Shown here piece after piece: positions 15,273-19,109 of a stretch of DNA of 30,710 bases. The stretch spans positions 1 through 30,710 of the forward strand of contig NW_021832446.1 in the NCBI RefSeq assembly GCF_006345805.1, read 5' to 3'. The position numbers and the translations under genes were made by a program. The DNA comes from Octopus sinensis. Taxonomy: Eukaryota. How positions within the stretch are numbered: the stretch's first letter is position 1; each line of letters begins with the position of its first letter. The notes below the pieces were generated by a model. The model saw nothing but the letters and a program-made list of their open reading frames with translations, did no database searches and was not told the DNA's origin.

Positions 15273-15709
15273 TATTTATTTATTTTATCTTCTTTTTCTT
15301 GATTGACTGAAATAAATTTTACTAATATAGACAAGCGATGATAATAATATGGTGAAATAAAATGGCTGCTGCTAACGAAACTGGTGAAATTCGGTGGCCT
15401 GTGTAATATTTTCTTAATTTCGTGTTAACGAGAATCGTCAATTTGTGCAGAACTATCACAGAACCAAATATATAGGCTTGCAGAATTACCTAAATTAATA
15501 TGCATACGTGTATACGTATCTATGTTTGCTTGGTGCAGACATTAAGGAGATTTCGAGTGTCCTTGAAAAGGAATGTTCTTTTAAAAATCGTTTGAACTAT
15601 TTGTGTAACTGTTTGATGTACTTTGAAAAAATTAAAATTTCGGCCCTGAAGACAAAAAAAATAGAAGAAAAATATCCGAAAAAGCTGATTTCTCATTCCC
15701 CTGAGCCAG

Positions 15710-16185
15710 CGAGAAGTCGTTTGTACTTTCGGGACAAATGTTATGTGATAAATTTAATGTCACCGGGTTGAAAATCGTTGCGGAAATTCTAATACAAGAG
15801 ACCATTTTTTCTCACAGAGAATTTCTAACATACAGTCCACACCGTACAATGTTCATTCATTACACCAGGAACAATCATTTTGTTTTGTCGAACAATTTTT
15901 TCGGAGATATTTATATTTATGACAGTTTGAACTTACCAATATCACAGGGACTAACAGCACAAATAACGATGCTGTACTCACCACAAACAAACATAAACCC
16001 TACATTTCAATAAATTCATATAAATAATCCCCAAGTTGGTCCATATGATTGTGGCCTTTTTGGCCTGAGTACGCATTTGAACTGGTCATTCGAAAAGATC
16101 CAGAGAGTTTTTATTTGATCAATCAAAAATGCGAGCACATTTAATATTTTGCCTTGAAAACAATAAACTTGTTCCTCCCCCGAAA
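15710..16185 (+). pseudogene. Ulp1/SENP (peptidase C48)-like cysteine protease domain within PLE1
   Basis: SGQMLCDK...FIHYTRNNHFVL (His 15876-78)...IYIYDSL (Asp 15921-23)...PQVGPYDCGLFG (Gln 16032-34, Cys 16050-52)...YAFELV...FDQSKMRAHLIFCLENNKLVP. This fits the H-W/F-V, YDS, Q..xDCG(L/V)F and FDQ..MR.HL..CL motifs of transposon-borne Ulp1-like proteases. One TAA at 16011-13 and two frameshifts (~16067, ~16107). Confidence 0.85.
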
Positions 16186-16444
16186 GTAAAGGTTTTTCAA
16201 ATGTCTACAAATACCACAGAAGTCACTCACTTTCTTTCACCCACCCAGAAATGGATTACCCCTAGAAAGATGGCTAAAAATTAACTTCTCACATGAACAT
16301 TCAAAGCAAGTTTTATCGCCCAGTAGGTTCCATGTTTTAAGTGAAGATTTCGAGCAAAACCCAAAAAGTAGTCAGGAATCTAATGAGAAAAAGACTCTAA
16401 AAACCACTTGCCCGAGAAAATCCATCACACTACAGAATAAGTCG

Positions 16445-18400
16445 GTCATAAATTTATCTAAAGTAAAGCTTTCGCCCGACGATGCCTTAGTCTTGGAGCT
16501 TCGACTGAGGTTCTTCCCAAGCACTAAGAATTTCGACAAGAATAAACTAGCTCAAGAGCTATTTCAGTTTGTCCGCCGTCACAAACTGAGGGAATATTTT
16601 TTTGAAAAAATGGTAACGAGGGGTCAGAAAACCTTATGCTTACTGAAAATAACAATGATGATGATCGAATCAGGCATAATTGGATTGAAAAGAATCCCAA
16701 TTGGTATCCAGATAAATTTTGGGATGGTCGTTCACGAGCACTACTGGAATTTCTTGAATCTTGTCAGACAGGCATTAGAGAAAGCCTTAAAACAAGTGGA
16801 AAGAAGTCTTGGAATGAGCTCACAAATTCCCAACGTTACGCACTTCGACGTCTAACTAATAACGATTCTATTGTTATTAAGATGGCGGATAAGGGAGGCG
16901 CTATCGTAATTATGAACAAAAGTGAGTATATTTCGACATGTGAAGAAGTTTTAAATGACAAAACTTCATATGAAGAATTACTTGTCGATCCAAAATCCAA
17001 TTACAGAGAGGAACTTGACAAAATAATTCTGGAAATGGAGGAAAACAATTTCCTTAATAAGACTGAATCTAAGATTTTAAGGTTAGAAAGAAGAATAACT
17101 GTATTTTATGGTCTCCCTAAAATACACACAAATTTCGAAAGATTTCCTCCAATGCGCCCAATTTGCAGCAGAAATGAATGTTGCACGGCCAAAATTTCGG
17201 AATGGCTGGATGGCTTTCTACTCCCTGTCGCAAAAAAATATTGAGTTCCTATATTCGGAATACTTTTGATTTTGTGTATAAAATCAACAACTCTTTTAAG
17301 CACTGAGGCCGTGTCGAGAACTGCTTTTTGGAAACCATGGACGTTTCTTCCTTATATCCCAATATTGACCACAATGAAGGGGCAGAAGCATGCATGGATG
17401 CCTTCGAAAAGCGGACAAACAAAAGTATTCCATCAAATTAGATTATTGAGGTTTGTGTTACAAAGTAACACAATGGAGGTTAGATAAAAATGTTACCACT
17501 AGACGGGGGCGGGGTTGCGCCATGGGTACCCCCATGGCAGTTAATTTCGGTAATGTCTTCATGACGAAATTCGAGACACACTTACTGAAGACGTTCAAAT
17601 CCCTTCATGGTCATGAACCAATACTCTAGTTAAAGTTCACTGATTACGTCGTTTTTGTCTGGGAAGGATCACAGGATAGTTTAATTGACTTCTGGCATTT
17701 CTGTGACTGTTAGGCTAAAAGGAAAGGGGGTAAAGACCCCTTCGGTCATGAATGACCATGGGATTGCACCTAGAAAGTTACCCTCCTAGACACAAGTCCG
17801 GGCAAGGTTGTTTTATGGAAGACCAGCAGTCGCCCATACATACCAGCCTCCCCTCTCCACGCCACCAGTGTTATCCAAGGGAAAGACAAAGGTCGATACA
17901 GCTTGGCACCAGTGACGTCGCAACTCATTTCTACAGCTGAGTGAACTGGAGCAACGTGAAATAAAGTGCTTTGCTCAAGAACACAACACGCAGCCCGGTC
18001 CGGGATTCGAGCTCGCAACCTCACGATCGTAAGCTCGACGCTCTAACCACTGAGCCATGCGCCTTCACATGGCTAAAAACTATGGCTTTAAGTCCAACAC
18101 AAAATTTACGTTTAGTTTTTCAAAAAATAGCGTTGAATTTTTGGACAAAACAGTTTTCTGGGGTAGAATAGTAACAGAGCTACTTCGCAAGCTCACGTCA
18201 TCCCACATTTACCTCCACCACCGCTCCGATCATCCACATCATATTATTCCGTCAAATCCGAAATCTCAATGCTTGAGGATAAATCGGATTTGTAGTGACA
18301 GAGGGGATTACTGGAAACATGCGCATATTTTTGTACATCATTATGTCAAACGCGGTTATAGTGAATCGCGATTAAAGGAAATTGCAAATGCCATGGCTAA
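16445..18400 (+). pseudogene. PLE1 reverse transcriptase (N-terminal motif to thumb)
   Basis: VINLSKVKLSPDDALVLELRLRFFPS; VRRHKLREYF; IVIKMADKGGAIVIM (16870-16914); FYGLPKIH...PMRPICS; TMDVSSLYPNI (17334-17366); AMGTPMAVNFGNVFM (17519-17563); degenerate motif C FTDY (17636-47); VEFLD; YLHHRSDHP...PKSQCLRINRICS. Confidence 0.92.
17721..18070 (-). mobile_element. Full-length tRNA/CORE-like SINE inserted in the PLE1 RT with an 8-bp TSD
   Basis: Box A TGGCTCAGTGG and box B-like GCTCGAATCCC. A CORE-like segment GTGTTCTTGAGCAAAGCACTT...CTCCAGTTCACTCAGCTGTAGAAATGAG follows. TSD GGCTAAAA lies at 17713-17720 and 18071-18078, and excising the insert restores the RT frame. Confidence 0.92.
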
Positions 18401-18639
18401 GATTAGCAAAGATAGTCAAACCTTCACGCATAATCTTAGTAAACAATGTGACAGGTTTTCCTTTGGTGATTAACTGGCACCGAATTTCGCTGACATTTCA
18501 AAAGTGTTGCATGAAAGTTACCAGCATGTGGCGAAAAAATGTCCGCGTTTCAGCCGCCTGTTGTAGCCTTTAGACGGAATAAGAATATAAGAGAATTATT
18601 GACCTCTGTATCTGACTCCAAGAAAACGAACATTGGAGT

Positions 18640-19109
18640 ATCTGCAAGTTGTACCTTGAAAAGCAGCCGCAAGAGAGGTAAGCTTTGTTCATTGTGCAAC
18701 AACATGAGCCAAGTGAATTCCATCTGGAATCATAACAGAAATGTTATGATTTATACAGAACGTGGGACATGTAGAGATTCCCATTTGGTGTACGCTGCAG
18801 AATGCACGAAACACAACTTGGTTTATGCTGGTTGCACAACAGAACAATTAAGAAAAAAGATTTAATGGGCGCAGATTCGACGTCAGGTGCAATAACAGTT
18901 GTTCGACAGAACTTGCTGAACATTTCGTTTCAAGCGGCTGCAATTTTAAAGAAGACTTGAAAGTGTATATTCTCAGAAAATATTCTGAATCTGCTTCACT
19001 TTCGCTTCTCAGAATGCATGAGAAATATGTTTGCGGGTTATTAACATCACGCCCCGGAGGAATGAATAAAATGACAGGAGAATGTTATCAAATTTTTACG
19101 ACTGTTTGA
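18640..19109 (+). pseudogene. PLE1 Cys-linker + GIY-YIG endonuclease
   Basis: CTL...CSLC linker; GTCRDSHLVYAAECTKHNLVYAGCTTEQLR; after a frameshift KRFNG.R...ELAEHF...LKVYIL...RMHEKYVCGLLTSRPGGMN, ending at TGA 19107-19109. Confidence 0.88.

Follow-up and report, generated by a model that had tools for sequence, protein, structure and literature searches.

The question raised by this locus is whether a Penelope-like element (PLE) can carry a Ulp1-like cysteine protease as a regular part of its reverse transcriptase (RT)-endonuclease (EN) polyprotein. The locus lies within a 30,710-nt stretch of Octopus sinensis DNA (contig NW_021832446.1, positions 1 to 30,710; hereafter, the window), which is AT rich and filled with microsatellites, finds its closest protein matches in Octopus, and looks like cephalopod nuclear DNA. 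PLEs move by target-primed reverse transcription, in which a GIY-YIG nick is combined with RT activity. Reviews describe them as RT plus GIY-YIG, or as RT alone (PMC6431247, PMC8557442). An initial annotation of the window had noted a protease remnant just upstream of the RT of a plus-strand PLE and proposed that both belong to one protein. Here, sequence comparison with intact relatives leads us to consider it highly probable that a protease-bearing PLE architecture exists and that the protease is integral to the family.

Protease and reverse transcriptase in one reading frame

In a tblastn search with a full-length relative as the query (P0022; 1,260 amino acids, aa), residues 234-1250 aligned colinearly with positions 15705-19082 of the plus strand, all segments being in order (E=8e-96), and three-frame translation of 15300-19250 likewise revealed a reading frame that is broken but ordered. 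The 5′ part of the alignment corresponds to the remnant of a putative clan CE/C48 (Ulp1/SENP-like) cysteine protease (15705-16230, plus strand), recognized from its sequence together with family-level profile and fold evidence. A word-indexed protein search with the repaired protease retrieved a single match, an Octopus bimaculoides protein with 74% identity (E=1e-65), listed in UniRef as 'Ubiquitin-like protease family profile domain-containing protein'. Together, the two E values place the observation well beyond chance. The four catalytic codons are intact and share one frame, exactly where the initial annotation had placed them: CAT (His, 15876), GAC (Asp, 15921), CAA (Gln, 16032), and TGT (Cys, 16050). 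The annotated remnant is present, although its damage had been understated, since a stop at 16011 and two frame changes, from 0 to 2 near 16065 and from 2 to 1 near 16105, fall inside the protease.

A single indel, located in an A-run at 16276-16280, connects the protease C terminus with 'QKWITPRK' (frame 1, 16246-16269) to the linker 'NFSHEHSKQ...SRFHVLSED...VINLSK...LELRLRFFPS' (frame 2), as had been predicted for the protease-RT join. Consistently, the octopus-type fragment P0009, whose identity to the window element is 79% over the queried stretch and 69% over the protease, is uninterrupted across the same junction residues ('KWITLRKTTKNYNFSHEHSEQ...'), reading '...QKWITLRKTTKNYNFSHEHSEQ...NRFRVLSEDFEQ...VINLSKLKLS..LELGLSFCPS' where the window splits them between frames 1 and 2. 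The order in this single reading is 2A-like motif, N-terminal PLE motif (N-motif), protease, linker, and 'VINLSK..LELGLSFCPS'. In the window, the low-complexity linker is rich in Ser and Lys (16231-16444, plus strand; continuous in P0009) and is followed by the PLE N-terminal block 'VINLSKVKLS...LELRLRFFPS' (16445-16600, plus strand), which aligns with 'VTNLSSRHLS...LELGLSFCPS' of P0022 and contains a GxKF/Y-type motif such as that described for PLEs (PMC8557442). Two short motifs are kept in the otherwise variable post-protease linker, KWxxP(K/R)K (window 16246-16269) and (N/S)RFxxL followed by acidic residues (16322-16348); they could be a localization signal, a cleavage site, or a SUMO-interaction-like motif. 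In P0009, the protease follows the N-motif without the ∼125 aa of coiled coil that P0029 and other relatives have there. It could be a variant that arose by deletion, a form due to splicing or intron retention, or an artifact of the gene model.

An exhaustive HMMER search with the octopus protease and an E limit of 1e-3 yielded 1,130 cluster representatives, and the counts that follow were taken from the 150 best of them, which are pairwise <50% identical. Protease and RT share one open reading frame (ORF) in at least 11 clusters with mutual identities below 50%. DKG plus YxDD motifs were found in 11 of the 12 representatives with ≥500 aa downstream of the protease, the PLE N-motif in 16 of the 24 with ≥150 aa downstream, and ExNPGP in 17 of the 34 with ≥150 aa upstream. 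Full-length relatives among the best HMMER matches measure 1,187-1,461 aa, with the protease at ∼190-510, RVT_1 at ∼740-1030, and GIY-YIG at ∼1117-1350 (RT and EN according to Pfam), and match in order the ∼1,100-aa N-terminal region/Ulp1/RT/GIY-YIG protein envisaged from the window. Their shared layout starts with a MDDLxxYRxRIG leader, a hydrophobic helix, (I/V)ExNPGP, the PLE N-motif SHRYFLxxC..PxG ('SHRYFLxxC..PKGL'), and a coiled coil; it continues with the protease, a linker rich in Ser, Thr, Pro, and Lys (KWxxPKK, NRFxxL), 'VxNLS..LELGLSFCPS', DKG, YIDD, and GIY-YIG. Matches to DUF8422 (PF28514) and HTH_animal (PF26215) are on record in the pre-RT and thumb-position regions of full-length relatives, and PF01541 (GIY-YIG) was matched at the C terminus of P0022, P0033, P0040, P0045, and P0104. 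In DNA, P0022 is one uninterrupted ORF (locus L001, 502-4284). The protease, RT, and EN follow one another on one strand at three further loci from two other assemblies. Of these, L003 is almost complete, L002 is cut off within the protease, and L004 holds the C-terminal half of the protease directly upstream of a PLE ORF. Locus L005 (contig of P0004) showed no protease upstream, but this contig seems to be cut short within the linker and gives no information on the question. The protease recurs in other copies and in distant relatives of this RT family, and no fixed stop separates it from the RT in the intact members.

The position of the protease becomes apparent by comparison with a second PLE in the window (PLE2; minus strand, ∼27500-30220), which comprises an N-motif, a GxKF motif, RT, and GIY-YIG without a protease. 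Its N-motif and 'VVTIP..SKGLRFTP' are separated by a Pro-rich linker only, and P0017, the one other protease-less relative with a complete N terminus that was read, likewise has a short linker there. As read from these alignments, the protease takes the place of the short linker found in ordinary PLEs, PLE2 among them, in agreement with the initial placement in the variable linker. The GxKF-type motif that bounds it takes the form 'LELRLRFFPS' in the window element (16493-16522), 'LELGLSFCPS' in its relatives, and 'SKGLRFTP' in PLE2, its Lys often being replaced by Ser or Thr in the lineage of the window element. In a neighbor-joining tree, which is crude (no support values, fragmentary sequences) and was not relied on for clade assignment, the protease-bearing sequences cluster; over the aligned region, they are 39-54% identical to P0022 (39% for the short P0042, 38% for the outlier P0099), versus 29% for PLE2.

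A protease that had entered as a nested or chimeric insertion from another transposon or a host gene, or that merely reflects a gene-model or assembly artifact, would also produce such a juxtaposition at a single locus. Related protease domains do exist outside PLEs (next to PHD fingers, beside a YqaJ neighbor, and in chimeric gene models), and the window copy holds one true nested insertion, a short interspersed element (SINE). However, order and junction are the same in P0009 and four other, unrelated loci, in at least 11 divergent clusters both domains lie in one unbroken ORF that was called on a raw contig with no introns, and neither termini nor a target-site duplication flank the protease segment. 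Insertion or gene-model chimerism cannot explain the DKG-plus-YxDD and N-motif counts given above, and we rejected it as a very improbable account of the family.

Identity of the protease domain

In an alignment of 30 protease domains, which are 24-43% identical to the reference (75% for P0001), the catalytic His, Asp, Gln, and Asp-Cys are invariant, and so are the family-specific R142 and H144 (MRxHL). The His-Asp-Gln-Cys order of clan CE is found both in this alignment and in the window, and the residue after the catalytic His remains aromatic (F, W, or Y). A family profile searched against PDB matched 6dg4, a Ulp1-like SUMO protease (3.4e-7), SENP1 (7e-7), SENP5 (3e-5), and Ulp1 (3e-4), as well as SENP8. 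The AlphaFold2 model of the domain reached a predicted local distance difference test score of 91.6 and a predicted template modeling (TM) score of 0.87. Foldseek ranked SENP5, SENP1, Ulp1, and SENP2 as the best structural neighbors of this model (E from 2e-5 to 3e-4), followed by bacterial CE deubiquitinases, with the polyprotein protease of African swine fever virus (ASFV) far behind at E=0.06. All of the top 16 entries belong to clan CE, i.e., twelve SENP/Ulp1 structures plus OtDUB, SseL, an MBP-SENP3 fusion, and SENP2-preSUMO (probability, 1.00; TM score, 0.45-0.61). Profile and fold model thus identify the predicted protease as a divergent clan-CE/C48-like enzyme whose nearest counterparts are SENP1/2/5 and Ulp1.

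Several observations weigh against the reading of this family as PLEs with a SUMO-type protease. Pfam Peptidase_C48 (PF02902) missed both the window fragment (searched as raw translated pieces) and P0001, and scored below cutoff on one relative (E=0.0015), which points to a divergent C48-like subfamily. The domain could be assigned only via the family profile and structure model; PF02902 is on record for non-PLE relatives of the protease. In PLE-linked members, E, Q, D, or M stands in place of the WLND Trp (alignment column 6), which is the first Trp of the Gly-Gly clamp in SENP/Ulp1 enzymes; this weakens a simple SUMO protease reading. Several non-PLE relatives retain the Trp. On the transposon side, most full-length relatives come from metagenome contigs, and the protease-bearing P0099 falls outside the main RT cluster in the tree. 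No hammerhead ribozyme was matched by Rfam in window 14000-20500 (E up to 5) or in L001-L003 (E up to 1), and the window copy has no terminal repeats. Minimal PLE hammerheads may escape Rfam models. No real RNA family was found in the Rfam search, the matches being low-complexity, false microRNA hits.

The missing clamp Trp and the sub-threshold Pfam score would also suit a domain to which catalysis no longer matters, either a relic or a pseudo-protease binding SUMO or ubiquitin, kept only as a spacer or scaffold. Such a domain would hardly be expected to keep His, Asp, Gln, Cys, R142, and H144 invariant in 30 sequences that, one pair at 75% apart, share only 24-43% identity with the reference. 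Invariant catalytic residues at low overall identity argue for selection on catalysis, and we regard a relic or pseudo-protease as improbable.

The MRxHL subfamily also occurs in ∼280-aa proteins that combine the protease with a PHD finger in amphibians (the frogs Xenopus, Pelobates, and Engystomops) and cnidarians (Clytia). These are the closest non-PLE relatives, with ∼30-35% identity, and dominate the family-profile protein search. The subfamily once adjoins a YqaJ-type nuclease and appears inside chimeric gene models as well. The PHD- and YqaJ-linked proteins (e.g., P0234, P0235, P0153, and P0109) probably represent further mobile elements and may be where the domain came from; it has probably moved between mobile elements.

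Decay and surroundings of the window copy

As judged from its sequence, the element at ∼15.7-19.1 kb (plus strand) represents a canonical PLE with a C-terminal EN, showing the GxKF-type motif, DKG, RT, and GIY-YIG that characterize this group, but the copy is dead. It is a functionless fossil, unable to encode any protein of the family layout. Six in-frame stops (16011, 17304, 17439, 17627, 17711, and 18471) and about eight frame changes (near 16065, 16105, 16276-16280, 16605-16640, 17240, 17455-17510, 18552, and 18857) interrupt it, and the catalytic YIDD of the RT is mutated to FTDY (17630-17662). The longest intact stretch is the pre-RT region (16642-17238, plus strand; ORF 16636-17244), which is 43% identical to P0022 aa 562-760 and contains the DKG motif MADKGGAIVIMN at 16882-16917. 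The RT core follows at 17247-17720 (plus strand; RVT_1 in relatives) and accommodates four of the stops and the frame changes near 17240 and 17455-17510. Downstream of the SINE, alignment to relatives places the RT core-to-EN-linker region at 18072-18551 (plus strand; 'SDHPHH', NPKSQCLRINRICSD), corresponding to the PLE RT-thumb position and carrying the stop at 18471. The last segment (18554-19109, plus strand; PF01541 in relatives), with frame changes near 18552 and 18857, comprises a linker and the GIY-YIG EN ('HLVYAAEC...LVYAGCT...RFNGRRFD'), of which 18782-19082 aligns with P0022 aa 1149-1250; its stop codon, ending at 19109, sets the 3′ limit of the element. The linker has a C-x11-CxxC motif (18650-18697) that is found upstream of GIY-YIG in octopus-type members (the window copy and P0029); the outlier P0099 has CX4CxCC instead, and most other relatives lack a Cys motif there.

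The 5′ boundary is uncertain, and the copy looks truncated or degraded upstream of ∼15700. A hidden Markov model (HMM) of the family N-terminal region gave no significant match there (E=0.1-0.25). The N-terminal helical region that had been annotated at 15421-15700 could not be confirmed: only 15541-15675 resembled the coiled coil, and weakly so (32% identity, with P0029 aa 168-217 as the counterpart; sum-statistic E=0.005). A possible, nonsignificant coiled-coil remnant ('IKEISSVLEK...ALKTKKIEEKY') can be delimited at 15541-15700 (plus strand). Neither the 2A motif nor a SHRYFL-type motif is present upstream of the protease in the window copy. A candidate 2A remnant, 'NFGP' near 15636, was dismissed as unsupported, the N-terminal HMM having found no significant N terminus at that place. 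No pseudo-long terminal repeats (pseudo-LTRs) were seen in the window, where the copy has no recognizable 5′ end. In L001, a 58-nt direct repeat (98% identical; 431-488 and 4825-4882, 4,394 bp apart) flanks the ORF, and a 110-nt RT fragment lies upstream of it (221-330, corresponding to 3094-3203), which hints at the partial-tandem, pseudo-LTR organization typical of PLEs.

A (GATA)n microsatellite (∼15143-15270) on the 5′ side and a CT-rich tract (∼19110-19180) on the 3′ side bound the window element within a wider field of (TA)n-like repeats, a setting that fits the reported microsatellite insertion bias of PLEs. The SINE that splits the RT is 350 bp long (17721-18070, minus strand), has a tRNA-like head called by neither ARAGORN nor Rfam, and is flanked by an 8-bp target-site duplication, GGCTAAAA, at 17713-17720 and 18071-18078; P0022 aa 918-924 are duplicated on both of its sides. 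The PLE copy of the unrelated locus L002 is closely followed on its 3′ side by a cluster of three tRNA-like matches (8594-9049; Rfam tRNA, 42-43 bits), which probably represent tRNA genes or SINEs. PLE2 is unrelated to the first element (27-29% RT identity), GC rich, and embedded in TG/CA-rich repeats. Finally, a minus-strand ORF at 5313-5633 ('INTWAVSLLRYEAGIIAWT...LHPKSDTDRLYIPRKREGRGL') looks like the C-terminal region of an RT fragment of the long interspersed element (LINE; non-LTR) type.

A 2A-like leader, proposed function, and parallels in other elements

All 12 N-terminally complete relatives read (among P0022-P0058, P0099, and P0009) carry (I/V)ExNPGP after a hydrophobic helix, usually preceded by Ser rather than Asp ('DPSIExNPGP'); in the reference 2A signature, a Leu-rich helix ends in D(V/I)ExNPGP. 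The searchable literature yielded no account of 2A-like peptides in PLEs. According to a recent preprint, 2A-like peptides adjoin Josephin or OTU deubiquitinases in Dualen-type LINEs, and a viral OTU enzyme lessens the losses that go with 2A-associated stalling (PMC13405545). The pairing of a 2A-like peptide with a protease in the PLE relatives, here of a third fold, is suggestive of convergence with Dualen-type LINEs.

Canonical EN-containing PLEs (Penelope/Poseidon, Neptune, and Nematis; Arkhipova 2006; Craig et al. 2021, PMC8557442) share with this family the single ORF, and the resemblance extends to the apparent 5′ truncation of the window copy, which is frequent in PLEs, to its flanking microsatellites, and, tentatively, to the pseudo-LTR-like direct repeats of L001. 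What sets the family apart is a stretch of ∼300 additional aa, made up of the coiled coil and the Ulp1-like protease, that separates the N-motif from the GxKF motif, together with its 2A-like N-terminal leader. [quoted passage not shown] However, the RT described here is of the PLE rather than the NeSL LINE type and the EN is GIY-YIG rather than restriction-like, which argues for independent acquisition or exchange of the protease and not for membership in that group. In Dualen/RandI LINEs and the PLE Chlamys-1_cBra (PMC8557442; PMC13405545), the retrotransposon polyprotein similarly includes a cysteine protease of the deubiquitinase type as an accessory domain, which in the Dualen type adjoins a 2A-like peptide, as in the PLE relatives; the protease fold there is Josephin/OTU, whereas that of the present family is clan CE/C48. 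In Chlamys-1_cBra, an N-terminal-EN PLE from a charophyte alga, the evidence is a weak C-terminal Josephin-like match (PMC8557442).

Cellular SENP/Ulp1 enzymes (PDB 1euv, 2iyc, and 9gnx) have the same fold, catalytic His-Asp-Gln-Cys order, and aromatic residue after the catalytic His. The PLE protease is only 12-18% identical to them, does not conserve the first clamp Trp, has a family-specific C-terminal 'DQSxMRxHLxxC...FP' helix, and is embedded in a transposon polyprotein. It also differs from the Ulp1-like proteins of DNA transposons and from the protease-plus-PHD proteins, which are ∼280-aa proteins or extra ORFs without RT or GIY-YIG. Ulp1-like proteases occur in KI-MULEs and Zisupton DNA transposons. 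They are also known in Cryptons (PMC3212892). No description of a C48 domain in PLEs was found in the searchable literature, which does not extend to Repbase and Dfam; within that scope, the initial view that this is not a described PLE architecture stands. A consensus of the family may well exist in Repbase or Dfam without the domain having been noted.

How could such a protease serve the element? We propose that the 2A-like motif would release the leader co-translationally and that the protease, which a flexible linker ties to the RT-EN, would remove a ubiquitin-like modifier from host or element proteins. Deconjugation may then shield the element protein, its ribonucleoprotein (RNP), or the integration site from SUMO- or ubiquitin-dependent silencing, restriction, or ribosome quality control. 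The nearest structures make SUMO the best guess for the modifier, with ubiquitin or NEDD8 as alternatives. SUMO is central to transposon silencing of the Piwi-interacting RNA and KRAB types, so that a SUMO-directed activity, if true, would be a plausible counter-defense. We give somewhat less than an even chance to the protease being a ubiquitin-like-modifier deconjugase that counters host silencing, restriction, or ribosome quality control.

The protease could instead act in cis, as do adenain and ASFV pS273R and as has been proposed for the NeSL-1 protease, freeing the N-terminal module from RT-EN with no host substrate involved. Its location inside a polyprotein beside a long flexible linker would suit this role, in which the conserved KWxxPKK and NRFxxL could be recognition sites; the first Gly-Gly clamp Trp of true SUMO proteases is lost in PLE-linked members, and clan CE includes viral polyprotein proteases such as ASFV pS273R. 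Against it, the nearest neighbors in sequence and fold are the cellular SENP/Ulp1 enzymes and not the viral processing proteases, and a 2A-like means of splitting off products already exists in the family. Moreover, reading full-length relatives by eye revealed no conserved Gly-Gly, and no AG motif, on either side of the domain, so that cis-cleavage would proceed without a visible site. We therefore hold a processing role to be possible but unlikely.

Deconjugation thus remains our preferred reading. In its broadest form, it would depict a widespread PLE lineage of marine invertebrates in which a StopGo (2A) leader is combined with a tethered Ulp1-like deSUMOylase or deubiquitinase that clears host SUMO or ubiquitin marks off the RNP of the element, off silencing factors where it integrates, or off stalled ribosomes, a counter-defense convergent with the Ulp1 of NeSL and with the 2A plus Josephin/OTU of Dualen. 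We advance this full picture only tentatively and consider it doubtful as a whole.

Beside NeSL/Utopia, Dualen, and several DNA transposons, the family represents another independent case of a mobile element with a ubiquitin-like-modifier protease. Since the protease domain is small, confidently predicted, and present in intact ORFs, both its substrate (SUMO, ubiquitin, NEDD8, or the polyprotein itself) and its effect on retrotransposition are directly testable. Collectively, a conserved PLE lineage with a 2A-like leader and a SENP/Ulp1-like module that is catalytically intact, as judged by its residues, adds an accessory enzyme to the picture of PLEs as compact elements.

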